A DNA stretch of 64,000 nt, taken from NCBI GenBank assembly GCA_002104905.1, contig MCFE01000053.1, forward strand, positions 124,001 through 188,000. Reading direction: 5' to 3'. Under the pieces are notes generated by a model. It saw only the letters and a program-made list of their open reading frames with translations. It had not been told where the DNA came from and made no database searches. Both the position numbers and the translations under genes were made by a program. Origin of the DNA: Basidiobolus meristosporus CBS 931.73. Lineage: Eukaryota > Fungi > Basidiobolomycota. This document shows, in pieces, positions 4,762 to 59,994 of the stretch (position 1 is the first letter of the stretch; every line of letters begins with the position of its first letter).

Positions 4762-5427
4762 GTGAATAGAAGGATATTACCTGGTGTAGGAGAACCTGAT
4801 GCCTAGATGGATATCGCGATAGTCTCTTTATATCTAACCCAATTGCCGTGAGCGTATGTGAATGGTCTCGGTAAAACATCTTGGCCTTGAGTGAATTATG
4901 CGCCGTGTAGTCTGGCTCAAGACTGGTTTTTGGAAACATACCCATACAAAGAATTACCGATGAAGCTTCGTCCTGAGAAGCCATACACAAGGTAAGGTGT
5001 GATGAAGTATCACGCTAACGCATCATCCAGGGAGAATAATATGAAACAAAACAGAGGAGTCTCAGTGGGACGGAATCATCACTAGGTTCACCTTCCTCAA
5101 TTGACTAGTCTATCTGGAGTATCATCACTTATCACCTGATTCACATCAAAAATCACATCCTATTTGGGCTACTACATTCAACCTCGGTACTGGGAGCATT
5201 TTTCACATATACTAATGAGCACATGATTGGTGTTACCAGTAGTGGTATGATTCTGGTCATATAACCCCACATAACATCACCCCACATAGGCTATGCAATG
5301 TGTCAAATTCCAACAGGTTCAATCCGGAGAGTCTCAGATTGATGTTCTCAACTGATCCTTATATTGGCTTTTAATGACCTTTGGTAGTGGTAGATATGGG
5401 GAAGCCATCATACATAGTTCTTGTGCT

Positions 5428-6170
5428 TTAAAGATCTCCATTCTTGAACCCTGATCGATAGAATGCAATGTATTTATTCATTCTCCTTATTGTTTTCTCT
5501 TGCACAAACACAGAAGTATGAGAACCAATTTGAAATTTCTCAATTTCGCTAACCAGCCTATGCTTCGATTCATGAACATCGGATAGTGTTATTCCAGGCA
5601 GTTTCAGGTGCGATGAGCCTACATTGAATGGAGTTCTGTTGTTAGGGTTAGCAGATCCTATGACTGTTGTAATGAACTGACCGTCCTTCACAAAGCTTCC
5701 GGAGTATTCCTTAGAATTCAACCGAATCTCACTTGATGATTTTTCTCAGGTTTTACATTACGCAGGTTGGTCTTGCACGCGTCCAAATGATAGCCTAGCT
5801 GATTGAACATTTCGACGTGCTTTCTACAATGCGACATATCCTTCAGTATGGGTCGGAGTTTAACATCTCGATAACTCAATTGCTGTCGTACCATTGCTTT
5901 TTGAATATTCAGCTCAAGTGAGGCCTCGAGTGGTCGAATGAACTTCTTGTAGACATCGTCATCCTGCCGGTGCAATGTTGGTTCGCTAGCGATCATACTT
6001 GCACGTATTGAAGAGACATACCATATCCAGTCGTGCTTGACCTATCTGGTCGTGGGCGGTAGCAAACTTTGCCAGTGCAGTGCCTATGGTTCGACGTGGT
6101 GAGCGGGAGACGCTATTGCACAAAGGATGCTGCAGCCATTATACCTAAAGGTTCCCTTGACACCAATGAT
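5428..6170 (-). pseudogene. 5'-truncated duplicate fragment of the Gvp36-like BAR gene
   Basis: Copies the middle exons and introns of 8765-10130 but lacks the start exons. It has a 1-nt insertion (CTATCATTTG vs CTACATTTG), and the region past KPEK is decayed (KDGQFITTV vs EDQFITAV). Confidence 0.85.
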
Positions 6171-6449
6171 CAATAGTACTCTGTGCGAGACATTCATTAT
6201 CCATTCACTACTGAATTCATCACTGATTCTGAATAACTTGGATTTTAACGATCTAACCAATGAGGTGTAGATTAGATTTCTCATGCCAATATTGGGGATA
6301 AATTACCAGAGTTTGGGATTCAGATGTAAATCGGGTAATTTCACACTTGATCCAAGAACGATATTTATATATAATATATACTAATATGTACGAAGAGTAA
6401 AAAATGTTATTTTCAGGACTAATCAGAGGCGATTCCTAATTTTGGTAGA

Positions 6450-7987
6450 TTACAAGGTGTATTGGAATTGGGCAGTGCTTTTGGATTCTGGCCCATTTGC
6501 CATATCGCTTTTGCTGTTCTGCGCAATAAGGTATCTCTTCAGCAAGAATGAGACAATGCATGTTAGAAGCAGCATTCCCATGTTAACGGCATGGCTGGGG
6601 GTATAGTGCGGCGCCTCTTCCTTCCTGTACAGCTGGCCTGATATAACGCCACCGATGTTGCCAAACGAGATCACAACTGCTGTGGCAGTGGCCGCTTTAG
6701 TCGAGCCACACATGTTGTTGTTAAGCCAGCCAAGCGAGAGCGGAATGCACGAAAAGACACCCATTGTGGCAATGCATGCGGATGCATAGAGGGCCTTGGT
6801 GTCCCTGAGCACAATGAGCAACAAATAGCCGACAGCGCCTAATAAGCTCTGGCCCACCAGATGATAGCCACGCTCATTCCGATAGTCGGAGTGGAATGCC
6901 ATGCCAATGGTAAACACAAAACCGAACGCGTATGGCGGGGCCGTTAGTAGTTGGGCTGTGACATTTGTAAACCCAAGATCGCGTACAATAGTGGGCAGAA
7001 GTAGGGCCAAGGAATAAAGCGGAAGAACGATGCCGATATACAAAAGGGCATACATCCAGACCTTCACGTCAGTAATAGCTTCGATGAATTGCTGCTTGTC
7101 GAAGTGGGATGAGGAGACTGCCATTTGGTCCTGGGCTAGGCGAAGCTCGACCAGCTCACGTTGCCTAGGGGTCAGCCATTTGGCAGTGGATGGCGAGTTT
7201 GGCAAATAAAACCTGGATTTTGTTAGTGAGTGGCTGCCGACTAAAATCCCACTGAACGGCATACCATGTGACAACCCCAAGAATTACGGTAGGTGCACCC
7301 TCGATGATGAAGATCCATTGCCAACCTGAGATGCCGGATATTCCATCCATGTGGGTGATTCCGTAGGCCAACACTCCACCAAAGGCTCCAGCAAGGGTTG
7401 CGGCAGAGAAGAAAAGGGCCACTCTAGAACACTGCTCTCTTCGAGTATACCAAAAGGTAAGGTAGAACACGATCCCTGGGAACAATCTGTTGAAGGGAGC
7501 CAAGTAAATACTACGAAAGTCAACGCGCGACAAGCAACCCGAATACCAACCCTGCCTCGGAGATGCCCAGAAATAGGCGGCATACCATCATACCAGGGAA
7601 GTTCTTAACAGCAGCCATACACATGGTGCAGGTACCCCATGTCACCATGATTCGAGCAATCCAGCGGGATGGAGAGTACTTTTTCAGGAGCAGGTTGGAG
7701 GGGACCTCAAAGATCACATAGCCAACAAAGAAGATAGACAGGCACCAGGAGTACTGACTTGGTGTGAGTCCGATGTCGACCTCGAGTTTTGCCAAACGAG
7801 CATTTCCAATATTTACACGATCCAAGAAGGAGAATAGGTACAACAAGCCGGCATAAGGCAGAATTTTGAAATCCAGTTTTCGCAGCAACTCTTTGGCTTC
7901 CTCGGGGGTCCACGTTGCTTCAGAGTCATATGCACCTGCTTTCATCTCTACCTCTACCTCGTTCTTTTTTTCCTGAAGGTCAGCCAT
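6450..7987 (-). CDS. MFS transporter, Dal5/Tna1 family, copy B, 3 exons
   Basis: Near-identical to copy A with the same two introns. A few amino-acid changes (ALLYIGIV vs AFLYIGIL; DYRNE vs DYQNE). Confidence 0.93.
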
Positions 7988-8764
7988 TTGTATAGGGGAT
8001 TGGTGTTTGAAAGGATAGAGCCCGAAGTTAAGATGTACATCTTGACGGTCTATTTATATTCTATACCTTTATTACAGCTGCTACTAGTCAATGTTACGTG
8101 CTATGTAGACCGGCTCAAGACTGGTTTTTGGGAAGACGCCCACGCAAAGACTCCATGGTCAGTAGACGACGACAGATGGGATGAAATTAGTAAATTTCCA
8201 CAGAATCAAGGAGAGTTTGTTATGAAACCAACCAGGTGGGAATAAAGTTAAAGTAAGACAAAGTTGCCTTCAATAGTTCGATTCACTTTCCTCAATTGAC
8301 TAGTCCAGTGTTTCTTATTGTGAGGTGAATAGTTAAGAACCAGGTGACTCGCACAAAGTTTCGTACATCACGGATCGAGTACTTTCTGGGATACACCGTG
8401 AACACATTCAAATTTTGGCTATGGGAGCATCTTTCGCATTTGTTGCATTTTTCACATCAATCCAGTGTCACAAATGCCTTTATAATCTCTCATTGCTGAA
8501 CTCATGATATGTATACCAATCTCAACTAATGAACTGGTGGTATTTTGTATCTGTGCTCAATGATGAAAAGCACATATTCACTCGAAGGGGTGAGATAGAA
8601 GGTATTGATGCATTCTTGTGAACCCTGATCGATGGAATTATAATTAAACTCAGAGATAAGCTTTATTCATTTATACATTCTCCACATTACATATTGTTTT
8701 CTCTTGCACAAACATAAGCATAAGCATGAGAAATTGGGTGGGGCAAAAATCAACCTGAGCCTTT

Positions 8765-10130
8765 CTACTCTTCTGTTTCAGCCTCTTCAGTTTCGCTGCC
8801 TTCGTCAATGTCTTCTTGGCTATTCTTCAGCTCATCAACGTCTGGCAAAATCCCTGAGAGAAGTTCGAGGGCATGCTTATGGTAGTTTCAACTGAACTGA
8901 AATCAGATCTGAAAGGTTCCGGATAGGTTCAGGCTTGATATGGCAACATCGTTAGTGGGGTAACATGATTTTTCAATGAATTTCAAGAACTTACTGAATC
9001 TACGACTGTTTTCATTAATACCATAGCTTCTTGTACTGCGGTAATAAACTGGTCTTCCGCCTTCTCAGCATCCGCCTTAGCCTAAAGCTATCTGTTATCA
9101 TCGTAGATCAAAAGATGGAATCCAGCCAAATGCCTCTTACTGCTTCTTCTTTCTCAGGTTTTGCATTACGCAGGTTGGTCTTGCACGCGTCCAAATGTAG
9201 CCTGGCTGATTGAACATTTCGACGTGCTTTCTACAATGTGACATATCCTTCAGTATGGGTCGGGGTTTAACATCTCGATAACTCAATTGCTGTCGTACCA
9301 TTGCTTTTTGAATATTCAGCTCAAGTGAGGCCTCGAGTGGTCGAATGAACTTCTTGTAGACATCGTCATCCTGCCGGTGCAATGTTGGTTCGCTAGCGAT
9401 CATACTTGCACGTATTGAAGAGACATACCATATCCAGTCGTGCTTGACCTATCTGGTCGTGGGCGGTAGCAAACTTTGCCAGTGCAGTGCCTGTGGTTCG
9501 ACGTGGTGAGCGGGAGACGCTATTGTACAAAGGATGCTGCAGCCATCATACCTAAAGGTTCCCCGACACCAATGATCTCTGCACTCTGTGCAGAGGCACG
9601 GGACAAAGCGTGGCTTAAGGTCTTGGGTGGCTCTTCAATTTCTTCCAAACCTGCACGGTCTCCAGCGTTCACCAAGGCTACTTGTTTCACTCCAATAGCC
9701 AAAGAACGAGTGAAATCAGCAAAAGAGTCTTGGAGATGATAAGGGTAATCGTATCCTTCGGTAGTGTAAACTCTAGCTACTTTAAGTAAGTTGTTGAACG
9801 AAACACGCACGGCATCCACACGCTGAAAATAACGATCGTTAGATGACTGCCAAGGAAGAAACGCAGATTTGCGATCGAGAGATGGGATATCCGTAAAGTA
9901 CTGACTTTCTCCATTTCAACGTATTCCTTGGGCAGTTCGGTTACGTCAGTAGCATTCCCAAATTTCTCTTGTGCTAGCTATGTTGAATATCAATGTAATT
10001 AAACACAGTGCGATGGAGTGGTCCAGTTGAGCTATACCTGCTTTGCCTGGCCAAGGCCTTGCTCCAGACTTTGAGCAAACTTTTTGGCAAGTGGATTGAA
10101 TTTTTGGCTGAAGGAAGAAAAGGAGTCCAT
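8765..10130 (-). CDS. GVP36: Gvp36-like BAR-domain protein, multi-exon; apparent +1 frameshift at ~8885
   Basis: Spliced reading: MDSFSSFSQKFNPLAKK...TELPKEYVEMEKRVDAV...EGYDYP..LQDSF...PPKTLSHALSRAS...ARLHLDACK...AEDQFITAV...PEPIRNLSDLISVQL/YHKHALELL. Four bases lie between TTG and TAC at 8884-8887. Confidence 0.82.
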
Positions 10131-12768: not shown

Positions 12769-15475
12769 TTAATTGCCGAAAAAGCGTTTGTATAGACCAC
12801 TGATACCACTGTGGTCATTGGTATCGTATGCAGAACCGCCAGATCCACCACCATTACCGCCAGATCCACCACCGTTACCGCCAGATCCACCGCCATTTCC
12901 ACCAGAGCCGCCACCATTGCCAGGGCCATATCCTCCGGCACCACCACCGTTACCACCGGATCCGCCACCATTACCGCCGGCTCCTCCTCCGTTTCCAGTA
13001 TCATAGCCACCAGCACCTCCTCCGTTTCCACCGGATCCACCGCCATTTCCACCAGATCCTCCACCGTTTCCTGGACCATAACCACCGGCACCTCCTCCAT
13101 TACCTCCAGACCCTCCTCCATTTCCACCGGATCCTCCACCGTTGCCACCAGATCCACCGCCATTTCCAGTGTCATAGGCTCCAGAACCTCCTCCATTGCC
13201 ACCAGCACCACCTCCGTTTCCTGGGCCATATCCTCCGGTTCCACCACCGTTACCGCCGGCACCACCTCCGTTGCCAGTATCGTATCCTCCAGCGCCTCCG
13301 CCGTTACCACCGGATCCACCACCATTGCCACCAGCACCTCCTCCGTTTCCTGGACCATAACCACCGGCACCGCCACCATTGCCGCCTGATCCTCCACCAT
13401 TACCACCAGATCCGCCACCGTTTCCAGTGTCATAGGTTCCAGCCCCTCCTCCGTTTCCGCCGCCATTACCACCAGCTCCTCCTCCATTTCCTGGGCCATA
13501 ACTACCGGCTCCACCCCCATTGCCTCCAGAACCTCCACCGTTTCCGGTATCATACGCACCAGAGCCTCCGCCGTTACCACCGGATCCACCGCCGTTGCCA
13601 CCAGAGCCTCCTCCGTTTCCTGGGCCGTAGCCACCGGCTCCTCCTCCATTACCACCAGACCCTCCTCCATTACCACCAGATCCTCCGCCGTTTCCAGTAT
13701 CGTAGGCTCCACCACCGTTTCCACCGGATCCACCACCGTTGCCACCAGAGCCTCCTCCGTTTCCTGGGCCATAGCCACCGGCACCACCACCATTGCCTCC
13801 GGATCCTCCGCCATTTCCTCCAGATCCTCCGCCGTTTCCAGTATCGTAGGCTCCACCACCGTTTCCACCGGATCCACCACCGTTGCCACCAGAGCCCCCT
13901 CCGTTTCCTGGGCCATAGCCACCAGCACCGCCACCGTTGCCTCCTGAGCCTCCTCCATTGCCTCCAGAACCACCACCGTTTCCGGTATCATATGCACCAG
14001 AGCCTCCGCCGTTACCACCGGATCCACCGCCGTTACCACCAGAGCCTCCTCCGTTTCCTGGACCGTAGCCACCGGCGCCACCTCCATTACCTCCAGATCC
14101 ACCGCCGTTACCACCAGAACCACCGCCGTTTCCGGTATCATATGCACCAGCGCCACCTCCATTACCACCAGCACCACCACCGTTGCCGCCGGCTCCCCCT
14201 CCATTTCCTGGACCGTATCCTCCAGCGCCACCGCCATTTCCACCGGATCCGCCACCGTTGCCTCCGGATCCGCCGCCATTTCCGGTGTCGTAGGAACCAG
14301 CACCACCACCGTGCACCAGCTCCTCCATTTCCTGGGCCGTATCCACCGGCACCGCCACCATTACCACCGGATCCTCCACCGTTTCCTGGTCCGTACCCAC
14401 CGGCACCACCGCCATTGCCTCCTGATCCACCACCATTGCCACCGGATCCACCACCATTGCCACCGGATCCACCACCGTTTCCGGTATCGTAGGCACCAGC
14501 ACCAGCACCACCACCGTTTCCGCCGGATCCTCCTCCATTTCCTGGGCCGTATCCGCCAGCGCCGCCACCATTGCCTCCTGATCCACCACCGTTACCACCG
14601 GATCCTCCACCATTTCCAGTGTCGTAGGCACCAGCACCACCACCGTTTCCGCCGGATCCACCGCCGTTGCCACCAGAGCCTCCTCCATTTCCTGGGCCGT
14701 ATCCGCCAGCGCCGCCACCATTGCCACCTGATCCACCACCGTTTCCAGTGTCGTAGGCACCAGCACCGCCACCGTTTCCGCCGGATCCACCACCGTTGCC
14801 ACCAGAGCCTCCTCCGTTTCCTGGGCCGTAGCCACCGGCACCGCCGCCATTGCCACCTGATCCGCCACCATTGCCACCGGCTCCACCACCGTTTCCAGTG
14901 TCGTAGGCACCAGCACCGCCACCGTTTCCGCCGGATCCACCACCGTTGCCACCAGAGCCTCCTCCGTTTCCTGGGCCGTAGCCACCGGCACCGCCGCCAT
15001 TGCCACCTGATCCACCACCATTGCCACCGGCTCCACCACCGTTTCCAGTGTCGTAGGCACCAGCACCGCCACCGTTTCCGCCGGACCCACCGCCGTTGCC
15101 ACCAGAGCCTCCTCCGTTTCCTGGGCCATAACCACCGGCACCACCTCCATTTCCTCCAGATCCACCACCGTTGCCACCGGCACCGCCACCATTTCCTCCG
15201 GATCCACCTCCGTTACCAGTGTCATAACCACCAGCACCACCTCCATTACCGCCGGATCCACCTCCATTTCCACCAGAACCTCCGCCATTTCCTGGGCCAT
15301 ATCCTCCAGCACCTCCTCCGTTCCCTCCGGACCCGCCTCCGTTACCTGCACCCGAGAGATCGCTGGTATCATAGGCACCAACACCGCTTCCAGCACCATG
15401 ACCGGACCCAGCTCCCGCACTTGCTGAGGTAGCAGCGGAAATTAAAAAGATGAGGGCAGGGGCAGAGAATTTCAT
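12769..15475 (-). CDS. Secreted glycine-rich repetitive protein (~900 aa) with a 2-nt frameshift at ~14311-14317
   Basis: Signal peptide MKFSAPALIFLISAATSASA followed by GGG[S/A]GGN / GGYGPGN / GAYDTGN repeats. The ORF track splits it into two frames. The span of 2707 nt plus 2 gives 903 codons. Confidence 0.85.
12830..15350. repeat. Hierarchical coding tandem repeat (21-nt heptad codons, 75-nt and 150-nt units)
   Basis: Near-perfect 150-nt periodicity at 14761/14911/15061. Units further toward the 3' end of the gene are synonymously diverged. Confidence 0.9.
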
Positions 15476-16362
15476 AGTACTGAAAACGCTTAAATATCTA
15501 AAGACTCGAAGGTCTGATACATCCAACTGGGAAGATGGCCGAGCTTATATACCTCGAAGGCAATCTTGCCAAATTATGCCAATGAATCCTAATTGAGGTT
15601 CCAATTGAAAAATCGCTGAATTTTGGAATAGCGCCCTTAAACTTTGGAATTGTTCCCCTTGACCCCTTAATGTATTTGTTTCGGGATACAATATCAGTGT
15701 TTACTGATCTGTTCTCAAAGCCTTAGTATTGAGCTAAAATAATCATGCACTCATGTGTTCCTTACATTATATTGAAACATTTCTATCCCTTAAACCGAGG
15801 GAAATCATCAAATAGTACGAAGCGAGCAATGTATTGCGAATGCGTTGACATTGATGGAAGATTATTCAGTGTATGGGAGATTGATTTATGGATCTGTAAA
15901 GCACATTATTCCCTCAAGTATGATCCTACATTCCAAAATAGGGAAATGATTCCATTGGGTTCATGACATTATGATAGAGCATGTGTTGGCACTCAAGACA
16001 TACATCGGCCCACCTGCATAATGGTGCCTTGACTTTAGTGCACCCTTTTACACACTCTAGTTGTATTTCGACCATCTTCTATCTGGATTCCCTAAAAGTT
16101 AGTCCACATTCGTATCGTAAATATTCCGAATGTAGGAAATTAAATCGGTCATCGAGGATGGTCTATTGCCATAGCCTTTAGCAAACAGCAGCTGGGAATT
16201 TGGACATTGCGTTACTGCAAGTTCAGTGCACCAAGAATTCCCCGGTCGCTATATATCGGCCTTATGCCCACTTCTCCTCAAGTCAAACAACCTCGCTTAC
16301 CACGAGTACTTCAGCCAATACCCCAAGTCTCAAAACCCACAACTCCTGATAAACCGGGCAAC

Positions 16363-17061
16363 ATGCATTTCACTCGTGTCTTCTTGTGCGCTACATTCTC
16401 TGCTCTGTTCTACTACGCAGAGGCCAGCCCGTCAATCACCTCCCCTCTGGGAAGCAATTGGCAAGCAGGAACAACGCAGACAATCACCTGGATTGACAAC
16501 GGGGACAAGGAAGGGATGCCCGAGTACTTTGACCTCTACCTGATGGCTGGCAAGATGACAGCTCTCCAGCAGGTGGGTGTGATTGCCACCAACATCACCA
16601 CCAAGCCAGGTCAGTACAAATGGGACATCCCGAAGGAAACACCATCAGGAAAGGACTATGCCATTCGTATTGGTGCGCCACCGAGTGTCTCATACAGTCC
16701 ATATTTCGAGATCTCCGGAGGTGCCGGCTCAAGACCCGAAAGTGGCCAAACTACTGGCTACTATGGTACGAGCACACCAAACTCGGACACTTCAGCGGGA
16801 TATAACCCTGACAAACAGTCACCCGCGTCACCCAGCCCCGGCCCGAACGGAAAATCAAGCGAGTCACAGCGCAAGAGTATGGGAAGCAGTGTGGACGCAT
16901 CGACACTCACCATCCTCACCATTGGAGCTTTGGCGATTGGATCAACAGTCTCACATTGTAGAGAATCGATGACAGGCGTAGTAGGATCGAATGACGATTC
17001 AATTAGAACGGAAAATGATGTTAGAGAAACCGCGAACCCATTATTTATTGGTCAGATGTAG
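16363..17061 (+). CDS. Kre9/Knh1-like N-terminal domain, Ser/Thr-rich surface protein 1a (C-terminus frameshifted relative to 1b)
   Basis: Signal peptide, then SITSPLGSNWQAGTTQTITW...FDLYLM...NITTKPGQYKWDIP...GKDYAIRIG...YSPYFEI. A 1-nt deletion at ~16941 replaces the hydrophobic end INSLTL* with a polar extension. Confidence 0.85.
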   Translation: MHFTRVFLCATFSALFYYAEASPSITSPLGSNWQAGTTQTITWIDNGDKEGMPEYFDLYLMAGKMTALQQVGVIATNITTKPGQYKWDIPKETPSGKDYAIRIGAPPSVSYSPYFEISGGAGSRPESGQTTGYYGTSTPNSDTSAGYNPDKQSPASPSPGPNGKSSESQRKSMGSSVDASTLTILTIGALAIGSTVSHCRESMTGVVGSNDDSIRTENDVRETANPLFIGQM

Positions 17062-17440
17062 AAAATCTATATTTAATATATGAATAAAAGCAAAATTCTT
17101 ACCTATCTTTTCTTTCATACAAAATCATTTTGCTGGTAATATGAAGAAATCAAGAATCAACGTTCCTATTGTCCCCTGAGTCCCGTATTTTTATTACACC
17201 ACTCATGTATCTTTTCATTATTGGAGGTTTATAAGTGAACCAGGCGGATGAAATCATCACGGATTAGTAACTTCAAATACGATTATTCGCGAAGTAATTC
17301 GTGCATGTTGAGTTTACTGGAATTGGGGTTTATTATGAAAATTAAAGAACAATTAATAAATACAAATTTCCCATTCTCTAGCACCATTGTCTAATCTAAT
17401 GGAATCGTCATTCGATCCTGCTACGCCTGTCATTGATTCT

Positions 17441-18040
17441 CTACAATGTGAGACTGTTGATTCCAATCGCCAAAGCTCCAATGGTGAGGATGGTGAGTGT
17501 CGATGCGTCCACACTGCTTCCCATACTCTTGCGCTGTGACTCGCTTGATTTTCCGTTCGGGCCGGGGCTGGGTGACGCGGGTGACTGTTTGTCAGGGTTA
17601 TATCCCGCTGAAGTGTCCGAGTTTGGTGTGCTCGTACCATAGTAGCCAGTAGTTTGGCCACTTTCGGGTCTTGAGCCGGCACCTCCGGAGATCTCGAAAT
17701 ATGGACTGTATGAGACACTCGGTGGCGCACCAATACGAATGGCATAGTCCTTTCCTGATGGTGTTTCCTTCGGGATGTCCCATTTGTACTGACCTGGCTT
17801 GGTGGTGATGTTGGTGGCAATCACACCCACCTGCTGAAGAGCTGTCATCTTGCCAGCCATCAGGTAGAGGTCAAAGTACTCGGGCATCCCTTCCTTGTCC
17901 CCGTTGTCAATCCAGGTGATTGTCTGCGTTGTTCCTGCTTGCCAATTGCTTCCCAGAGGGGAGGTGATTGACGGGCTGGCCTCTGCGTAGTAGAACAGAG
18001 CAGAGAATGTAGCGCACAAGAAGACACGAGTGAAATGCAT
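17441..18040 (-). CDS. Kre9/Knh1-like Ser/Thr-rich, probably GPI-anchored protein 1b (199 aa)
   Basis: Inverted near-identical copy of 1a. Ends in SMGSSVDASTLTILTIGALAIGINSLTL*, a GPI-signal-like hydrophobic tail. Confidence 0.88.
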   Translation of the reverse strand: MHFTRVFLCATFSALFYYAEASPSITSPLGSNWQAGTTQTITWIDNGDKEGMPEYFDLYLMAGKMTALQQVGVIATNITTKPGQYKWDIPKETPSGKDYAIRIGAPPSVSYSPYFEISGGAGSRPESGQTTGYYGTSTPNSDTSAGYNPDKQSPASPSPGPNGKSSESQRKSMGSSVDASTLTILTIGALAIGINSLTL

Positions 18041-18561
18041 GTTGCCCGGTTTATCAGGAGTTGTAGGTTTTGAGACTTGGGGTATCGGCTGAAGTACTCG
18101 TGGTAAGCGAGGTTGTTTGACTTGAGGAGAAGTGGGCACAAGGCCGATATATAGCGACCGGGGAATTCTTGGTGCACTGAACTTGCAGTAACATACACTC
18201 AAACTCCTTCTCAACGTCATCTGCTGCATACCAAGTGGGTAGATGTATTAATATAAAAGTGGAAATTTTGAACTCCACATGCACTCCTCGCCCACCCACC
18301 CCCGCACTCTTGGACATTGCAGCGGAAACTAAAGCTGGGATAACCATTTTTCCCTACTGACGGTAGCTGGGTATAAGTAACTCTACTATCCTTGAATCGT
18401 TTTTGAGTAATTTCATGAATGCTGGATGGAATTTAACAAACAGTTCGAACTCCCTGGAATCAATAGAGTATTGTATATAGAAATTGTTTATTTCTTAATA
18501 ACAACCTAACTACACATAAATAAGATCTTCTGCCCAATAATTATTTTCTAAATGATAAGAA

Positions 18562-19137
18562 TTACATGTTCTTGAAATAGAAAGCAAACATACTGGACAC
18601 CAGTAAATGAGATAGATTGTGTCTGGTAATAATACCCTCTGATGGTTTGGCATGGGCGCTTGAAATAATACTAGAATTAGGTTTCTGTTCCTCCGCTTTA
18701 GTTCCATTACTCTGGGGCTTTGTATCAGTACCGGAGCTACCATTTCCGGATACGTTGCTATCGGGTCTTGAGCCAGCACCTCCGGAGATCTCGAAATATG
18801 GACTGTATGAGACACTCGGTGGCGCACCAATACGAATGGCATAGTCCTTTCCTGATGGTGTTTCCTTCGGGATGTCCCATTTGTACTGACCTGGCTTGGT
18901 GGTGATGTTGGTGGCAATCACACCCACCTGCTGAAGAGCTGTCATCTTGCCAGCCATCAGGTAGAGGTCAAAGTACTCGGGCATCCCTTCCTTGTCCCCG
19001 TTGTCAATCCAGGTGATTGTCTGCGTTGTTCCTGCTTGCCAATTACTTCCCAGAGGGGAGGTGATTGATGGGCTGGCCTCTGCGTAGTAGAACAGAGCAG
19101 AGAATGTAGCGCACAAGAAGACACGGGTGAAATGCAT
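18562..19137 (-). CDS. Kre9/Knh1-like surface protein 1c (191 aa): same N-domain as 1a/1b, different stalk and tail
   Basis: Nearly identical to 1b from the ATG to ...SGGAGSRP (~18761), then unrelated DSNVSGNGSSG...HLLVSSMFAFYFKNM*. The upstream sequence is also unrelated. Confidence 0.88.
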   Translation of the reverse strand: MHFTRVFLCATFSALFYYAEASPSITSPLGSNWQAGTTQTITWIDNGDKEGMPEYFDLYLMAGKMTALQQVGVIATNITTKPGQYKWDIPKETPSGKDYAIRIGAPPSVSYSPYFEISGGAGSRPDSNVSGNGSSGTDTKPQSNGTKAEEQKPNSSIISSAHAKPSEGIITRHNLSHLLVSSMFAFYFKNM

Positions 19138-20636
19138 ACTGATCAAGTTAGAAACTACAGATATTGAATTCTAGATAAATATGATTGGTGCTCAATAGAC
19201 TCTTTCTAAGTATCCTTTATGTTGATTCGGTAACAGAGGGATAAAGTGCTTGTATGAAAGTCAGTGGCTTGATTCGGAAGGATGGATAAGGGCCCCATAT
19301 ATAGTGATCGGGAAATTACAGATGCACCAAATCTGCAGTAATGCAATCAACTCTCATCGAATGCAAGATGTCAGTTAAAATCCCCACAGTTATGCGGAAG
19401 GATTGCTTTGGACTTTCTCCGAGGTCCACTCTTATGCAATGGAGGTTTTGTTCCCCAGCCCTCTCAAAACGCTGTGTATCGTAACATCTAATCTTGAAGA
19501 CTGTGGTGTGATTCGAGTAGGAATTCATGAACAGGGCATACTAAAGAACACGGTTGCTTCAAAGATCATACAGATACATATAAACGTGTACACCTAGCGG
19601 ACCTCCGCAGCCATGATCTTCGCTATAATATCAATCATGAACATGTTTGTGTTTGTGCCACATCCATCAATGTTACTCGACCGGCCTAGTTAGGAATATC
19701 ATGATACAATTCACTAAAGCGCATATATAGCAGACTCGATGACAGCTGACCTATATGCAGTAATCCATCCCCAAACCACCTCACATTCATATATCTCGTA
19801 CTGAGAGTGACTACCAGAGTGACTATGGCTAAAAGGGAGCTTTTTTATCTGAAACCAAAATATGGGATTTCCAATGAAGAGCCACGAAGCCAGGGTGTAT
19901 AGTCAACTCGGGTCACCTTTACGTAGACAACAATACAATTAAACTCTAAACTCCATTAAGACGGGACCTAGACTCACAACCAGCCATCAGAGAATTCGAC
20001 CAGATCAAGTGGAACCATGCGATCTGATGTTTTTAGCAATAACTTTTTATGGCCTTCGTTAGCGATAGCACTAAAGCCAGTCTTGGCATACCTTAATGCC
20101 TTGACCACTCAGCCGCCAACGCTTGGCTCGTAATGTTCCCAATTATAGACCATTCTTTGTGTATGCAACATGGATGTGCTTTAACCTTGTCAACATGACA
20201 CATCACAACTTCACCAGTTCTGTGTGCTTAATCCAAATGGAGTTAAGTGTACTGTACTTCATTGGCGCCTCGGATCTGAGACACAGACATTAGTAAGCTT
20301 GAGATTTTTTTATATTGATTTTATTTCGGTTGGATTATTTGGTCATAGTACACGATTGTAGCTGCATATTGGTAATCTACAATATCGATTGGAACTATCA
20401 TTTTGTTGGCCCATTCTAGCCAATATATAGGGTTGGTACTGTAATATTGGGGAAATTTCTGTATTCTACATAAACCCTATGCATGGTGCGCACTTGAGAT
20501 TCCCAAACCTCCATAAATTTATACAATTTCCTGATTTCTCTTTCCGTCTGTTCTGTATTATACTTGTACTTGACCAAAGTGTGCGCTACTTCCTCTCCAT
20601 ATCCACGAGAACCCATAGGTGCATATTATCATTCTC

Positions 20637-22994
20637 ATGTTGACTTCTCAAGAAGCCAGCTTTTCTAGCGAGGCCAATGCGAATAAGAAATCTAGGACAA
20701 GCCGCGCTTGCGATCTCTGCAGACGAAAAAAAGTAAAGTGCGATGGTCTAAAGCCAACCTGCTCTAATTGCAGCTCTCTCGGCCATGATTGTACCTATCT
20801 CGACAAGCCTAAAAAACGGGGTCCACAAAGTTCCCAACCAAAGGCCCTGGAAGCACGACTTAAACACCTAGAGAGTTTGCTCACTTCGCTTGTCGACAAC
20901 GGTGGCGCCATGACCAACCAAATCGCCAATGAATTACGCTCAATTAACGAACACGGCGATTCATCCCCCAACATAGAGTCACCCGAACAAGAAGAATCGG
21001 AGGTAACTATCCTTGCAGAGAAGCCTGGCCGATCCGATGCTAAAACCTTTATTTAGGAGGAACTGAGCGAAGACGAGGATCACAGCGCGGATGAGGATGC
21101 CGCGTTGGATGTTGGTGATAAGCCATGCCCTCAAGATGTATCATATCGGTATGCCGGGAGCAGCTCTGGCATGTACTTACTAAACGACAATATCAAAAGA
21201 AGCCAATCTGTACACGATATTCGGAAACTTCTGCCGGAAGCATACAATGATATTCCGGATCTTCCGGAGTCATTTCCCCCACCGGAGCTCGGTGAAAAAT
21301 TGTTGAAGATATATTTTTGTCGATTTCACCCGTATATGCCAGTGTTCCACGCGAACGGATTTATGAACAAATATCGAGAAGGAAAGGTTCCCCCTATTGT
21401 TCTCAACGCCGTCTACGGGCTCGCATGTATCCACTCTGGAGATCACAATATCTTCCCAGATGTCGAGTCATACACCAAATATGCTCAGATGTTCTTTCTT
21501 CGCACCAAAGCATACCTTGATCAAGAATACCATTCATCATCCATTCCGGTGATTCAAGCACTCTTTCTGATGACATTCAGCCCTACGTCGGGATGGCTCT
21601 TCCTTGGGATGGCTATTCGTATGGCTCAAGATCTAGGCCTGCATAGAAATATCGAGTCCCAAAGCATGGACCCCATCGAAAGGGAAGACCGCAGATTGTT
21701 GTGGTGGTGCTGCGTTGTTATGGACCGTTTTCAGAGTTCGGCTCTCGGCAAGCCGATGTCCATCAGTGAGACAGACTTTGACACAAAACTGCCATTGGAA
21801 ATAGCAAGCTCGCAGCCCATATTTACCAACTTACCGAACTCCGTCGTTTCCTTACGGTATTTCACTCATCTGATCCGCCTGACTAGTATCATTGGCCGGA
21901 TAATGAAGGAGGTATACGGGGTTGATTCTCCCCCGAACGCTACCGGAAAGATCCTTTGGACACTAAATACAGAGATTCGAGACTGGGAGGCAACATTGCC
22001 TGCGGAGTTCAAGTATGATTACACACGGCCACTGAAGAACAACGTACACTCCATCATGCTCAATACTTTCTGCCAATTCGCCGTCATCTTGCTGAACCGT
22101 CCATTCATCCCACGAGCAAACAAGTACAAGAAGTCCACAGCAATCAGCCCTGCGCTAAAGGTCTGCTCAAGAGCTGCCAGCATCATGACATTCATAAGTT
22201 ACCACACTCCCAATGGATATAGATTACACGGGGTTATTTTCAAGACATTGTTTACATTTTCATCTTCAATGATCCATCTTATCAGCTCACTGTCAAACGC
22301 ACCCGACATCGCACAAACCGGAAGAATCAATTTGTCGTTTAATTTACGCTTATTGCAAGAGTATCAGGAGATCTCATCGGGCTCGGCGCGTTGCCTCAAC
22401 TTCATGAGAGAGATCGTTCAGGATCGGAAGGTGCATAAAGTGAACGAGCTTCCGCCAGAGCCGCCCTTGCCTCCACCAGTCCCGATCTCACCTGACCTCA
22501 ATAACAAAACCCCAAAACGAAGTGATTCGGGGGCTCTTCTAATCATCCCAGAAAGACATTTTGGCTCTCCGGTAAATCGGAACTCGGGGTCACTTTCGCC
22601 GACCAGTATAACAACGCTCAATTCGGTCAAGATGGAATCACCATCGGAGCCGTCTCAAACCACCACCCCTACTGTTACCACGTACCCAAACCTGAACCAA
22701 ATCAATATCGCGGACCCGATATTCCAGTATCCTAATATCTCCCAAACCATGCAAGGCCCAAGGAATCTGTTCTCACCAGAGGCCTACTCCAGCCCGGGTA
22801 ATTACATGAATTCCCAGCGTGAGGCAAGTGTGAATTCATCCATGTCCTTGTCCGAGATCTATCAGCAGGATTGTGCACCCGGCCCCTTCATCGGGAATCC
22901 GCAGTTCTACAACAACCACCAAATGGACATCAATATGCAGGAGTGGAATAATTATATTGACCAGTTTTCGAATTTCGCCTCCCCGTCCATGTAA
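20637..22994 (+). CDS. Zn(II)2Cys6 transcription factor with fungal-specific TF middle domain, 2 exons
   Basis: RACDLCRRKKVKCDGLKPTCSNCSSLGHDCTY..KKRGP zinc cluster. YFCRFHPYMPVFH, LGMAIRMAQDLGLHR and RRLLWWCCVVMDR motifs. One intron at ~21003-21056. Confidence 0.93.
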
Positions 22995-30336: not shown

Positions 30337-31040
30337 TTAATTGATACATGACATCAAAAATGCGGGCATCAGCGCGACCAGAACGGATGCACCGAAGTTC
30401 GCGCTAGCGCCGTTGACCGAGATTGGAACTTTTCCGGCGGTATCTGGGTTACTTGCCACGTTCGCAACAGGAGTGGAGGATGGTGTGGGGGTTGCGTCAG
30501 ATTTGCTTGTGGCCTTGGATACAGCGGAGGGAACGATAGCTGTTTCCTTAGGTGCTGGAACGTTAGAGGTACTGGTGACCTCGATGTTATTGATGGAAAA
30601 AGATTTGTCGTTGGCTTTGGAACCCTCGACGTCGAAGAAATGGGAGTAGAATACATCGCTACCAGAGCCGATACGAACGGCATACTGAGCACCAGAAGGG
30701 ATAGTGTTGGGAACGGTCCATTGATATGGACCCGATTTGTTGGTAAGTCCTTTTGCCACAACACTGACCTCCTGTAAATTGTCAGCTTTACCAGACATTA
30801 AAGTGATGTCGAACTTGGTGGGGGTGGTAGTTTGATTATTCTCTAACCTGTGATGATGACACTTAACGTACTGGACTGGTTTCATTGATCTGAGTGAATG
30901 ACTTACCAATTAATAGTGACCTTGGTCCCAGATACCCACTTGGTTCCATCAATTGGCTGGGTAATGTAAAAGCCACCTAGGGCGGAACTGGCCAAAAAAG
31001 CGACAGAACTTAGGAAAGTGAGACCGTTCAGGAGAAGCAT
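30337..31040 (-). CDS. Kre9/Knh1-like Ser/Thr-rich GPI protein 2a, 2 exons
   Basis: MLLLNGLTFLSSVAFLASSALGGFYITQPIDGTKWVSGTKVTINW, intron, then FDITLMSG...GPYQWTVP...QYAVRIG...YSHFFDV. Ends SVNGASANFGASVLVALMPAFLMSCIN*. Confidence 0.88.
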
Positions 31041-31917
31041 TAAAGAAATAAGAAGATAAGCTTAATGGCACTGGTTACGTCGCATGAGGATTATATATAG
31101 ATCTTCGAAAGGCCAATCCTTGAAAACAAACCATAAATGTAGCGTAGCGAGTACAAGAAGAATTCTAGAGTAATGTATTTCATCATCTTTCAATAAGCAT
31201 TTGACCTTTTTGATGTGGCTGGCAGCTCGAATCAGCCCTTACATTAATTATACAGTAAGTGCCCAGCATAAAGTCCACTTTCGTCCCTCCCAGATGACGG
31301 CCATTAACATGTACAACATAAGCATTTGGCTACTTGTTACAGACAACCATTGGCTCACCATGTCATGGTGTATTATGAGTTGTGTACCGGTGGCCACCAA
31401 TGATGGCCATTTTCTCTAATTAAATGTATCTATCCCTTGATTGTTGCATCTGGCTTGAGAATTCGGCATGGAGTCTAATTTAAACCAAATTTATGCTTGA
31501 TATGAACCTTCGGGCTTAGATTACTGGACTTGATGGTTACCAGGGACCGTCCAGATGGAATCGAAATAATTTGCTTCAATCGATTATGTTGAAACCGAAG
31601 TACCAAAAACAGTTTAGTGAAAAGGGAAAACTCGTTATTACAAGTAACGAATTCAAATCCGTACCAAAATTTGTACATAATTAAATTTGTACCATGCAAT
31701 TAAGCTAGTACTATTTCATAACAACTTACTTGATACCGTATCACAGTAGTTTGTTATGGAAAGGTTGGACATGGGAGATGACTACGAGATAAATATCTGA
31801 ATCAGTCAGTACGCTACACACATGTATTTTCGAGGAGCTGACAGTATAAAACTAAAGCGATATCAACACGAAGTACTCAGCTTCCTCTCCAACATAGCCT
31901 AGATTCCTTTCAACACA

Positions 31918-32733
31918 ATGTTCTCAAAGACCCTCGCATCTGTCGCCGCTGTCGCTTTGTTGGCCGCCTCTGCCAGCGCTGATTACTCCATCGTTGAGCC
32001 TGTCGAAGGTACCAAGTGGGTTGCTGGAGAGACTGTTACCATCAGATGGTGAGTACATGACCACTATTGCATGAGCTGAAGCATTATTGTTTTCCATCAC
32101 ATTCTAGTTCATCATCCTAACATATCTTTTATCAGGGTTGAGGTTGCTGGAACTCCTACCCCCGAGAAACTCAGCCTTGCCTTGATGGTCGGTGAGCCCA
32201 CCCAACTTCAAGTCAGCCAAGTTATTGCCGATGTTGACTCCAAGGCCGGATCCTACAAGTGGACTGTTCCCAGCACTGTCCAACCCAGTGCTCAATACGC
32301 TGTCCGTGCCGGTAGCGGTGATGCCGTCAAGTACTCTCACTACTTCGATGTTGAGGGTGACAATGTCAGTGTTGCTGCTGTCCAATCCTCTACTGATTCC
32401 GCTGTTGAGTCATCCACTCCCAGCAGTACCGCAGCCATCCCAGTTGCTTCCAGCAACGCTACTTCAGTAGCCTCTTCTGCTACTCCTGCTTCCAACTCCA
32501 CTACCATTGCCAGCACCAGCCTTGTTAGCCCTACCTCTAGCATCGCCTCGTCTATCACTTCTTCCGGTGCTTCTTCCAAGCCCACCAGTGCCGCCACTAG
32601 CGCTCCAAGCAAGGTTAGCTCACAAGCCACTCCTTCTCCCAGCAAGACCCCCGCCAGTGCTGGTAGCAACCTTGCCATCTCCGCCATCTCTGCATTGATC
32701 CCCGCTGCCTTGGTTGCTTACATGCGCCAATAG
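31918..32733 (+). CDS. Kre9/Knh1-like Ser/Thr-rich GPI protein 2b, 2 exons
   Basis: MFSKTLASVAAVALLAASASADYSIVEPVEGTKWVAGETVTIRW, intron 32049-32135, then GSYKWTVP...QYAVRAG...YSHYFDV, a Ser/Thr stalk and SAGSNLAISAISALIPAALVAYMRQ*. Confidence 0.9.
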
Positions 32734-33466
32734 AGGGAATCTGGCCAACATTATAGTAGTAGTAGTTTGCGCAATGGCATCAGCAATCAGTGTTCATCGC
32801 AGTTGGCAAGCCATCAAAAGCATAATAATAATGTATTAGCTCGCATGAATCAGAGTATTCGTATTATTATAATTATTAATCAGCCCTATACCCAATAAAA
32901 TGAAACTTGTTCAGTTGGTACTACTGTGTAGCAACAACGACAAGAAGCAAGAATCACCAAGCGTTTATTCGATTATATTGGATATTGCGAATTCCAGCCT
33001 TTATGGCCGAATGTGTTCGCCATTCGAATGGTGGATGGAATTCCGATAGTAACGCCGAGGTCGTTGCACCTGGACAAATAGTTGGCCGGTTAGGCATTGT
33101 CATACAGGGCATTGCGGGATTTTTGTTTAGGTCGAAGTCGGAGATATTCCTGGCACGATATCCCGGCTCCGGTTGGGTGAAGATTGGCTCTGGGTGGTGG
33201 GAAGGTATCCGATTTTCGCTTGGTTAAAGATTATCAGAAAATTTGACTTCATCATACTTGCTACTCAGTAGGACCCCAGCTGGAGAGGTTTTATTATAAC
33301 GGGTATAGGGCTGATTAATAATTATAATAATACGAATACTCTGATTCATGCGAGCTAATACATTATTATTATGCTTTTGATGGCTTGCCAACTGCGATGA
33401 ACACTGATTGCTGATGCCATTGCGCAAACTACTACTACTACTACTATAATGTTGGCCAGATTCCCT

Positions 33467-34306
33467 CTATTGGCGCATGTAAGCAACCAAGGCAGCGGGG
33501 ATCAATGCAGAGATGGCGGAGATGGCAAGGTTGCTACCAGCACTGGCGGGGGTCTTGCTGGGAGAAGGAGTGGCTGGTGGGCTAACCTTGCTTGGAGCGC
33601 TAGTGGCGGCACTGGTGGGCTTGGAAGAAGCACCGGAAGAAATGATAGACGAGGCGATGCTAGAGGTAGGGCTAACAAGGCTGGTGCTGGCGATGGTAGT
33701 GGAGTTGGAAGCAGGAGTAGCAGAAGAGGCTACTGAAGTAGCATTGCTAGAGGCAATTGGGGTAACCAAGGTACCAGATTTGCTAGCATTGGTGGCTACA
33801 GTTCAGTGGTTTGGGAACCGCTAGCAGATGAGCTAGCTCCAGGGACTTTGCCACCCTCAACATCGAAGTAGTGAGAGTACTTGACGGCATCACCGGTACC
33901 AGCACGGACAGCGTATTGAGCACCGGGTTGGACAGTGCTGGGAACAGTCCACTTGTAGGATCCGGCCTTGGAGTCAACATCGGCAATAACTTGGCTGACT
34001 TGAAGTCGGGTTGCCTCACCAGCCATCAAGGCAAGGCTGAGTTTCTCGGGGGTAGGAGTTCCAGGAATCTCAATCCTATTCAAAGACATGTTAGAATAAC
34101 GTACCGTATGAGATGGAACAACAGTGATAGAAAACAATAATGCTTCAGCTCATGCAATAGTGGTCATGTACTCACCATCTGATGGTAACAGTCTCTCCAG
34201 CAACCCACTTGGTACCTTCGACAGGCTCAACGATGGAGTAATCAGCGCTGGCAGAGGCGGCCAACAAAGCGACAGCGGCGACAGATGCGAGGGTCTTTGA
34301 GAACAT
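33467..34306 (-). CDS. Kre9/Knh1-like protein 2c, inverted copy of 2b with an apparent -1 frameshift at ~33802
   Basis: Same exon 1 and intron donor as 2b. ACTGAACTGTAG gives a stop after the domain; one added A restores TETVATNASK... and the identical GPI-type tail. Confidence 0.8.
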
Positions 34307-35014
34307 TGTGTTGAAAGGAATCTAGGCTATGTTGGAGAGGAAGCTGAGTACTTCGTGTTGATATCGCTTTAGTTTTATACTGTCAGCTCCTCGGAAATAC
34401 GTGTATATTGCATGCATTCGGATCAACCAAAAATCCCAAGGAAAATACCGCTCAACGCAAAATAAGGAATGGGGCTGTGGTACGAATTTTATGAATCCGA
34501 ATAAACAAGCGCTTGGGGTAGCACAATCCTCAGCAAATACAACAATTGATTCGAAGGCCCACCATTATAAGAAATGATTAATCCTGTGTTTTAGTTACTG
34601 AGGCCAACTGCAGAAGGAAGTTTACTCGTAATACACAATATCATTGCCAAGTATTTTCAGGAACCGGTCAGGTATAGATTCACAAAAATAGTAGGCTGTT
34701 GGCCGTTTTCGAGGGGAGACCAAATTGGGAAGTGGGATCATTTTATATTTCTTCTATTCCAAGTAATATATATTCCAACCAGTATCATGCCGATGCACCT
34801 AAAGGAATTGGCACTAAGCAAGCTTATCTCGCGCGTTTTTCGGACTTGATTAATGGATTTCTATATGCTTGTGACACTGGGTGGATTCTGACCACTCGTG
34901 GTTCACAATCGATCGTTTATGAAGTTACTAACTATGATAGGTCACTCTGGATTTTTTTGATTGGCATCTCGCATAGACTATACTACTGGGCATGTTACGC
35001 ATCATCATTCTGTG

Positions 35015-53899: not shown

Positions 53900-54250
53900 A
53901 AGCTTCTTAATTACACCTAAATATTTGCCCAACTTGGTCATTTAGATCATTGTCTACAAATCTTAGAGAGTTCTGGCCATATTCCTTGTTAGGATTTACT
54001 TGGAATATTTTCACCAAAACATCAGGTACCCAGAATATGAAATTTTGTTAAGTTGTCCAAATAGCCCCAAAATTTGCACACATGTTCTTGGAACCTTTCT
54101 AAGCATATTCTATGTGTTAATACTTGCCAAGACCATGTAAAAGTATAAATACTACTTTTACATTCAATAAATCATTAAGTGAAAACCACATAATCTACTT
54201 GTTCTCCCAATCACTTCCAATATCTCCAAAACTCTTAGAACAACATGTTG
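53900..54250 (-). repeat. Degenerate dispersed repeat, copy 1 (homologous to ~59995-60335 and to 63935-64000)
   Basis: Shared strings include GCCAAGACCATGTAAAAGTATA, CAATAAATCATTAAG and TTGTTCTCCCAATCACT. Many stops in all frames. Confidence 0.75.
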
Positions 54251-59700: not shown

Positions 59701-59994
59701 AGCAAAAATCCTCCATGGATAAAATTTATTAAAGGATGTTGTTGAATATAGACATTTCCGCCTCAACCCCCCTGTATATGCCAAGTATGAAGCTCAGATA
59801 CTATCTTTTCATTAGTTGTGAGCAATACAATGTTTATCCAAGAGCGGGGTGGAGTTATGGCTCCATTTGAATTTAATTTGGATAGGAGTTATAAGTAAGA
59901 ATCAAATACAAGTTTGAAACTGCTACTATATAAGCAACAGGTTTAGCAATATTTGTTTGAGACTAATATCAAAGGCCAGGTAGATATTGTTGCA

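Follow-up and report, generated by a model that had tools for sequence, protein, structure and literature searches.

Concerted evolution in a cluster of Kre9/KNH-domain genes of Basidiobolus meristosporus: ectopic gene conversion as the probable source of a coding block shared by three cell-wall protein genes

Several described systems combine a constant and a variable part or keep inverted gene copies alike. In bacterial shufflons, such as that of pilV on plasmid R64, a dedicated tyrosine recombinase (Rci) acts on short specific sites (sfx) and thereby joins promoterless alternatives to a constant segment, which is present once and has a single promoter. The ampliconic palindromes of primate Y chromosomes possess arms of 9 kb to 1.45 Mb that are kept identical by arm-to-arm conversion. 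Concerted evolution by interlocus conversion is recognized by a sharp, near-identical tract inside old, diverged paralogues, by differences within the tract that are synonymous only and by paralogues within one genome that are closer to each other than to the orthologues of a sister species. In fungi, the flip/flop region of Saccharomyces chromosome XIV contains the Centroid genes YNL018C/YNL034W in a 4-kb repeat that flanks 24 kb, and both orientations occur in many strains (PMC9731477). Mating-type switching in Ogataea polymorpha and Komagataella is starvation-induced via a defined pathway and, by moving one of the two MAT loci, subjects it to centromeric silencing (PMC5720833, PMC4238957). 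The proteins treated here contain the PF10342 domain, which defines the commonest predicted GPI-anchored family of zygomycete secretomes (PMC9391592).

The 64,000-nt stretch of the B. meristosporus CBS 931.73 genome analyzed here, in the following termed the window, contains three closely spaced genes, 1a, 1b and 1c (Table 1), with the orientations that had been assigned in an earlier, sequence-only reading. That reading had expected PF10342, and in a Pfam search Kre9_KNH indeed matches residues 30-117 of all three proteins (E 2.2e-16, 1.5e-16 and 1.7e-16 for 1a, 1b and 1c, respectively) with 60.8-61.3 bits over profile positions 5-94 of 94, the curated gathering score cut-off being 24.6 bits. 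As judged by eye, the N-terminus (MHFTRVFLCATFSALFYYAEA, followed by SPS) resembles a signal peptide in that it begins with basic residues and continues with a hydrophobic core up to an A-x-A site; the position of this putative cleavage site is kept in homologues from B. ranarum. The Kre9/KNH proteins of the window are probably secreted, Ser/Thr-rich, GPI-anchored wall proteins. Mean Kyte-Doolittle hydropathy of the last 18 amino acids is +1.86 for 1b, which fits a GPI signal, +0.66 and thus weakly hydrophobic for 1c, and -0.80, i.e. not GPI-like, for 1a.

Table 1. Features of the Kre9/KNH gene cluster (positions within the window)
Feature	Position	Strand	Remarks
Palindrome arm A, whole 1a transcription unit	16211..17028	+	TATA box 16250-16257, ~40 nt before it, 5' UTR, CDS, start of 3' region
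Gene 1a, ORF, 232 aa	16363..17061	+	Signal peptide, Kre9/KNH domain, Ser/Thr/Pro-rich stalk
Spacer, unique, 345 nt, AT-rich (31% GC)	17029..17373		Between convergent arms
Palindrome arm B, whole 1b transcription unit	17374..18192	-	98.3% identical to arm A
Gene 1b, ORF, 199 aa	17441..18040	-	C-terminus hydrophobic and GPI-signal-like, as usual in the family (...STLTILTIGALAIGINSLTL)
Gene 1c, ORF, 191 aa	18562..19137	-	Signal peptide and domain as in 1a/1b; other stalk and C-terminal signal
Probably converted block in 1c, ATG to codon 126	18758..19137	-	Counterparts 16363-16742 (+) in 1a and 17661-18040 (-) in 1b
1c core promoter, diverged homologue, with TATA box (CACTATATATGG)	19239..19347	-	~72% identity to 16206-16316 of 1a
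Sixth Kre9/KNH paralogue, second-exon ORF	30337..30909	-	First exon upstream; 46% identity to 1b domain
Gene 2a arm of second convergent Kre9/KNH palindrome	31813..32934	+	ATG ~31918, one intron; pairs with 34411-33258
Gene 2b, partner arm of second palindrome	33258..34411	-	Reading frame broken between domain and tail

The genes 1a and 1b constitute an inverted duplication of 819 nt comprising promoter, coding sequence and 3' end, so that each arm carries 152 nt of promoter and the entire Ser/Thr-rich tail. The arms differ by 13 substitutions, three of which fall into the 152 nt of promoter and 5' UTR, one into 576 nt of coding sequence and nine into the inner 88 nt, and by a 1-nt indel at 16941/17461. 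This indel, 18 nt ahead of the 1b stop, is the sole cause of the difference between the two C-termini: the resulting frameshift exchanges the hydrophobic end for a 39-aa hydrophilic extension, which is why the C-terminus of 1a is not GPI-like. The "three different tails" noted earlier are therefore in effect two types, 1a/1b and 1c, plus one frameshift variant. Taking the 10% divergence at the inner edge as neutral, one would expect 13.5 synonymous differences between 1a and 1b, and a single one is seen (Poisson P 2e-5). It thus appears that conversion between the arms acts repeatedly; error-prone repair near the palindrome centre, instead of age, could be the reason why identity drops in the inner 88 nt. 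As in the Y-chromosomal palindromes, inverted gene-bearing arms enclose a unique spacer and arm identity exceeds that of the least-converted part. The same applies to a second gene pair, 2a/2b. However, the arms found here measure 0.8-1.1 kb and each corresponds to one compact transcription unit.

What connects 1c with this palindrome is a block of 377-380 nt, containing the signal peptide and the PF10342 domain from the ATG through ...SGGAGSRP, which is 98.4-99.7% identical among the three genes (98.4-98.7% over 380 nt for 1c versus 1a/1b). On the 5' side, identity begins precisely with the first base of the start codon, the two preceding positions (-1 and -2) being different, and the 3' edge is codon 126, right after SGGAGSRP. 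Within the block, 1c departs from the sequence common to 1a and 1b at four synonymous third positions and at the boundary codon (GAA/GAT, E/D). At one further synonymous site, 16566, 1b agrees with 1c and 1a differs, a pattern that is compatible with patchy exchange. Over the first 125 codons, dS is 0.048-0.060 and dN is 0; all five differences are synonymous, for which the chance under neutrality is 6e-4. All three genes have been under purifying selection since conversion and are therefore working genes. The near-identity of signal peptide and domain, its limits in 1c and the handful of synonymous differences had all been described correctly in the sequence-only reading.

The flanks of the block in 1c present a different picture. 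The 1c promoter had been considered unrelated to that of the other two genes; it is instead a diverged homologue, ~72% identical to the 1a/1b promoter over ~110 nt with CTATATAT included, and its local alignment score of 32 stands against an average of 10.1 for shuffled sequences (sd 1.4; z = 16). A 58-nt insertion in 1c separates this promoter-homologous stretch from the ATG. The stalk and the C-terminal signal of 1c, on the other hand, are indeed unalignable with those of 1a/1b at the DNA level (z = 1.9), as had been proposed; at the protein level, 22/50 to 22/65 residues of the tails are identical.

Comparison with the proteins P0003 (K7432_006911) and P0004 (K7432_006068) from B. ranarum, carried out at the protein level, bears on the age of these differences. 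The 1c tail is identical to that of P0003 at 38/64 residues and both proteins comprise 191 aa, so 1c is orthologous to P0003 as judged from tail sequence. P0004 is a short 133-aa model that is regarded as orthologous to 1a/1b on the basis of 7/12 tail residues; it occurs once among the B. ranarum proteins, which is uninformative with regard to a second identical copy. The two B. ranarum proteins differ from each other at 14/99 domain and 11/21 signal-peptide residues, while signal peptide and domain are identical at 120/120 residues among 1a, 1b and 1c, i.e. with 0/120 differences. Conversion after speciation is thus well supported. Compared with the two B. ranarum proteins, the triad agrees at 90/99 and 87/99 positions in the domain and at 9/21 and 7/21 positions in the signal peptide; some diagnostic sites of its domain have the residue of P0003 and others that of P0004, a mixture that favours neither direction of conversion. 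We also considered 1c as a chimeric new gene made from a recent domain duplicate and a foreign tail. This idea was discarded because domain and tail are combined in the same way in P0003 and because the promoter of 1c is an old homologue. Metagenomes were scanned with aligned sequences of 1b, 1c, P0003 and P0004; there was no relative among the 268 pattern matches.

Taken as a whole, a history in which the three genes were homogenized by ectopic gene conversion between pre-existing paralogue types is very likely, as read from the pattern in one assembly. Both the 1a/1b type and the 1c type would predate the split from B. ranarum. An inverted duplication of the 1a/1b type would have produced the convergent palindrome with one compact transcription unit per arm. 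Ectopic conversion, i.e. non-reciprocal homologous recombination, would then have overwritten sequence between copies, repeatedly from arm to arm, which would account for the single difference in the coding sequences of 1a and 1b. Conversion between the 1a/1b type and 1c may have happened once or a few times, somewhat earlier than the arm-to-arm events, and would have been limited to the one part in which enough similarity for pairing was left, from the ATG to the end of the domain. The tract probably ends where homology fails, at the 58-nt indel and the heterology upstream of the 1c ATG on one side and in the unalignable low-complexity stalk on the other. A 5' boundary placed exactly at the ATG looks neater than expected of a tract that ends at random; the adjacent indel and heterology may explain it. 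The earlier suggestion that recent conversion affected the folded domain only is borne out, with the addition of the signal peptide: dS of the block is 0.05-0.06, whereas the 5' flank is ~72% identical and the 3' flank unalignable, and P0003, the orthologue by its tail, has a domain and signal peptide that are normally diverged from those of its own paralogue.

Gene conversion is a known and ordinary process, and the triad represents textbook concerted evolution in a fungal wall-protein family. Paralogues within the genome are closer than orthologues, and synonymous divergence in the tract lies far below that of the flanks. A sharp, near-identical tract with synonymous differences only, situated inside old and diverged paralogues, is common to the triad and to other cases of concerted evolution. 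Nothing essential sets it apart; the 5' boundary at the start codon and the extension of the tract over the fast-evolving signal peptide are particular to the triad. A literature search for Basidiobolus in combination with gene conversion gave nothing relevant. Paralogue trees of the PF10342 wall-protein family will mislead wherever conversion has acted.

The second convergent palindrome is located 15 kb from the triad and has a spacer of ~325-357 nt. Identity between 2a and 2b is patchy: promoter and exon 1 are 100% identical, the intron is poorly conserved, the domain exon is 91-94% identical, the linker again poorly conserved and the tail 96-100% identical. This is the opposite of the situation in the triad, as exon 1 and tail are identical here and domain and linker have diverged. 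A comparison of the spacers gave no similarity and thus no support for an origin of both palindromes by duplication of one ancestral palindrome; for the 345-nt spacer between 1a and 1b, no similarity was detected elsewhere in the window either. The window also contains a direct duplication of 1.6 kb at 98.3%. From the patchwork of the second palindrome and this duplication it follows that duplication plus conversion is the local norm. It is conceivable, albeit unlikely, that a genome-wide habit of Basidiobolus is seen here, with many old palindromes of the size of a transcription unit (spacers of ~350 nt in the present cases) kept near-identical by arm conversion, and with blocks that cause recurrent small inversions by which promoters, domains and tails of surface paralogues are re-paired on evolutionary timescales. 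This would resemble the flip/flop polymorphism on Saccharomyces chromosome XIV but act inside genes. Should gene palindromes prove systematic and maintained, Basidiobolus would become a tractable fungal model for palindrome upkeep by arm-to-arm conversion.

Homogenized inverted repeats do flank a segment in the triad, since the 1a and 1c copies of the block are 98% identical and 2,015 nt apart. Strains may therefore differ by a 1a x 1c inversion or a 1b x 1c deletion through non-allelic homologous recombination, as a functionless by-product of conversion. The Saccharomyces region provides a precedent: there too, inverted copies of a fast-evolving family are continually homogenized, making inversion by homologous recombination possible, and both orientations arise anew within species through recurrent homogenization of these genes (PMC9731477). 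However, the 1a/1c repeat of 380 nt has a tenth of the length of the yeast repeat (the 1a/1b repeat measures 819 nt; the intervening segments are 2 kb and 345 nt, respectively), the one available assembly shows a single orientation, and we regard such a polymorphism as very unlikely. Inversion in yeast swaps nothing within genes, whereas in the triad it would exchange tails. If the inverted blocks were shown to flip in population or long-read data, the locus would matter more.

The sequence-only reading went further and proposed, by analogy with shufflons, a recombination cassette switch in which 1a x 1c crossovers flip the 2,015-nt segment 16743-18757, re-pair promoters and tails and let the cell vary its surface. 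This is geometrically possible, with inverted blocks of 98.4% identity, and the products are surface proteins of an animal-gut fungus. Furthermore, fungi use or tolerate inversions between inverted repeats, in the Ogataea MAT system with a phenotypic outcome (PMC5720833, PMC4238957), and the flip/flop repeats of Saccharomyces likewise consist of homogenized paralogous genes (PMC9731477). Nevertheless, the proposal finds no support and we consider it highly improbable. The likeness to shufflons is only abstract and confined to a constant N-terminal part and alternative C-terminal parts. A single promoter with one constant 5' segment, promoterless 3' segments, specific sites and a recombinase are all absent from the triad, in which the 380-nt coding block itself is what is repeated and in which a TATA box, an ATG, a signal peptide and a domain are present separately in 1a, 1b and 1c. 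Three complete, independently promoted genes under purifying selection do not correspond to a single expression site with silent cassettes, and, unlike in Ogataea and Komagataella, neither a silencing position nor induction nor a single expressed site is indicated. Whichever way the segment lay, the cell would make both products, and an inversion would alter no more than which of two short stalks goes with which of two related promoters; the folded, exposed domain stays constant and the swap would cover a low-complexity stalk of ~70 aa and the anchor signal. Exchange between 1a and 1b alters nothing notable. The copies in 1b and 1c, separated by 1,097 nt, are repeated directly, and the same recombination between them would delete DNA irreversibly. 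The intact 1a/1b palindrome implies that no unpaired 1a x 1c crossover has occurred since its last homogenization, and the second palindrome preserves exon 1 and tail instead of the domain. As the earlier reading had stated, no recombinase is apparent: a search against Pfam, confined to ten of the large ORFs in the window, revealed no recombinase, transposase or nuclease among these but a cyclin, MFS transporters, a Zn-cluster factor, a 2OG oxygenase, an acyl-CoA dehydrogenase, an RRM protein, a hydrolase and an aquaporin, with one ORF unmatched. Finally, the 4-kb inverted repeat of yeast underwent zero flips in ~53,800 mitoses and 950 meioses (PMC9731477), so a 380-nt repeat should flip on evolutionary rather than physiological timescales.

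An assembly or polishing artefact, by which the 1c block or the 1a/1b palindrome would derive from collapsed or mis-joined haplotypes or paralogues, might be suspected from the very sharp block boundaries but can practically be dismissed, given that the locus lies well within a contig of ~196 kb, the arms enclose a unique spacer and differ by the substitutions and the indel described above, 1c has four private synonymous variants and the combination of the domain with a 1c-type tail is independently present in B. ranarum P0003. For annotation, 1a, 1b and 1c are three real genes, one of them with a frameshifted anchor signal; with 2a, 2b and the sixth paralogue they make up a local cluster of six genes for ordinary Kre9/KNH-domain (PF10342) proteins.

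All three neighbouring Kre9/KNH-type wall-protein genes, 1a, 1b and 1c, match PF10342 (Kre9/KNH-like N-terminal Ig-like domain; Pfam, 61 bits, E ~2e-16, residues 30-117), as the sequence-only reading had expected. In a protein word search the window's own proteins rank first, followed by four B. ranarum proteins (79-81% and 55-56% identity) and one B. meristosporus paralogue. Three further members of the family lie within the window at 30.3-34.4 kb. In zygomycete secretomes, PF10342 is reported to be one of the two families with the largest numbers of proteins predicted to be GPI-anchored (PMC9391592).

A repeat search and a self-BLAST of the window gave concordant results. Genes 1a and 1b form an inverted duplication, the arms of which start ~40 nt before the TATA box and 152 nt before the ATG, span the entire coding sequence and reach into the 3' region, each thus representing a single compact transcription unit. 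Gene 1c has only a short block in common with them. Its 5' edge is the first base of the start codon, the copies being already unlike at -1 and -2, and its 3' edge lies at codon 126, right after SGGAGSRP, exactly as had been described from the sequence. That description was largely right, with corrections needed for the tails and the promoter.

Coordinates of the triad, the second palindrome and other features in the window
Feature	Position	Strand	Remarks
Gene 1a ORF	16363-17061	+	intron-less
Gene 1b ORF	18040-17441	-	intron-less
Gene 1c ORF	19137-18562	-	intron-less
Arms of 1a/1b inverted duplication	16211-17028 vs 18192-17374		819 nt, 98.3% identical
TATA box in arm	16250-16257
Spacer between 1a/1b arms			345 nt, unique, AT-rich
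Block common to 1a, 1b and 1c	16363-16742 = 17661-18040 = 18758-19137		380 nt, 1c 98.4-98.7% identical to 1a/1b
Second palindrome, Kre9/KNH genes 2a/2b, convergent	31813-32934 / 34411-33258	+ / -	spacer ~325-357 nt
Direct tandem duplication, period ~3.2-3.4 kb	3157-4769 / 6383-7995; 5742-6186 / 9150-9591		98.3%; 96.9%
Gly/Asn-rich repeat protein	12769-15526	-	periods 21, 54, 75 nt
Zn2Cys6 transcription factor	20619-22994	+	directly adjoins triad
Direct repeat	53894-54242 / 59988-60331		350 nt, 77% identity

The earlier proposal that gene conversion homogenised this block is borne out by low dS within it, by its old flanks and by comparison with B. ranarum proteins. Four synonymous third positions and the boundary codon in the block set 1c apart from 1a and 1b, while at one additional synonymous site 1b equals 1c and 1a is unlike. 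Across 125 codons dS is 0.048-0.060 and dN is 0 (Nei-Gojobori). The probability of all five differences being synonymous under neutrality is 6e-4, so purifying selection has acted on the copies ever since homogenisation. The flanks of the 1c block are old. The 1c promoter, previously called unrelated, does align with that of 1a/1b over ~110 nt including the TATA box (~72% identity; score 32 versus a shuffle mean of 10.1 ± 1.4, z = 16), with a 58-nt insertion in 1c between this stretch and the ATG, and the 3' stalk regions are unalignable as DNA (z = 1.9).

The comparison with B. ranarum settles gene conversion at the level of protein sequence. The B. ranarum homologue P0003 is, like 1c, 191 aa long, and its tail is identical to that of 1c in 38 of 64 residues, so the 1c type is older than the species split. 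P0003 differs from P0004, its closest paralogue, in 14/99 domain and 11/21 signal-peptide residues, whereas 1a, 1b and 1c are identical at all 120 corresponding positions. The standard hallmark of concerted evolution is that paralogues resemble one another inside one genome but have diverged across genomes, while their flanks are orthologous. Some diagnostic sites of the common domain match P0003 and others P0004, and thus neither direction of conversion is favoured.

Conversion would require homology at both sides of a tract, which may be limited on the 5' side by the indel and heterology upstream of the 1c ATG and on the 3' side by the unalignable low-complexity stalk downstream of SRP. Homology of all three copies begins at a common point ~155-160 nt upstream of the ATG, which suggests that the repeat edges are limits of conserved, convertible sequence rather than original duplication breakpoints. 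The 1a/1b arms differ at one of 576 coding nucleotides, versus nine differences over their innermost 88 nt. Were divergence at the inner edge neutral, 13.5 synonymous differences would be expected and one is observed (P 2e-5). Judging from this deficit, the palindrome is probably older than arm identity implies and undergoing re-homogenisation; an alternative explanation for the divergent inner edge is a higher mutation rate near the palindrome centre.

The claim of different tails does not hold for 1a and 1b. Their Ser/Thr/Pro-rich stalks are identical and only a 1-nt indel at 16941/17461 (GGA-TCAAC in 1a, GGAATCAAC in 1b), 18 nt ahead of the stop codon of 1b, separates the C-termini. It shifts the frame of 1a into a 39-aa hydrophilic extension at the expense of the hydrophobic GPI-signal-like C-terminus (mean hydropathy of the last 18 aa -0.80, versus +1.86 in 1b). 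The C-terminus of 1b is a hydrophobic stretch of the kind usual in the family, and three B. ranarum homologues, P0003, P0005 and P0006, have hydrophobic ends too. The 1a state is therefore either derived, by recent loss of the anchor signal, or a sequencing or base-calling error.

The triad had also been read as a shufflon-like cassette switch, in which a crossover between 1a and 1c within the block re-pairs tails and promoters. The geometry holds, as such a crossover would invert 16743-18757 and swap tails between two promoters, but expected features of a cassette switch are absent and we consider it unsupported and improbable. All three copies are complete genes, and every one has a TATA box, an ATG and a signal peptide of its own. 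A domain scan of ten large ORFs of the window found no recombinase or transposase domain. Exchange between 1a and 1b would merely flip the spacer. Between 1b and 1c, which lie 1,097 nt from each other as direct repeats, recombination would remove the tail of 1c and the promoter of 1b irreversibly. What stays constant is the folded domain, which is presumably exposed, and only the stalk and anchor signal, together ~70 aa, would be re-paired with a related promoter. In the second palindrome, genes 2a and 2b, with one intron apiece after exon 1, form an identity mosaic (promoter and exon 1 100%, intron poor, domain exon 91-94%, linker poor, tail 96-100%) that is in keeping with stochastic conversion tracts rather than with a constant-domain, variable-tail design. 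The 2b reading frame is broken between domain and tail; 2b could be a pseudogene or have an additional intron, or the break could be an error.

The flip/flop region of Saccharomyces chromosome XIV, a homogenised 4-kb inverted repeat of paralogous genes, is the analogue with the best documentation. Inversion there recurs over evolutionary time, with 0 changes in ~53,800 mitoses and 950 meioses (PMC9731477). Inversion via the far shorter block of the triad should be even slower. Regulated recombination-driven flip/flop switching in Ogataea depends on position-dependent silencing (PMC5720833, PMC4238957), of which the triad locus gives no hint.

An assembly mosaic is unlikely, since the triad lies well inside a contig of ~196 kb, the spacer between the arms is unique, 13 substitutions and one indel set the two arms apart, and 1c carries variants of its own and an architecture that occurs independently in B. 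ranarum. One metagenome scan found nothing.

Elsewhere in the window, the tandem duplication contains ORFs for MFS-transporter fragments of 276 aa each. The long Gly/Asn-rich protein, built of GGNGGGSGG...YDTGNGGG units, has a signal-like N-terminal start (MKFSAPALIFLISAATSASA), an ORF frame change midway and no Pfam family match. The Zn2Cys6 fungal transcription factor carries a CDLCRRKKVKCD... cluster followed by a Fungal_trans domain (PF04082, E 1e-37) and is probably split by an intron.
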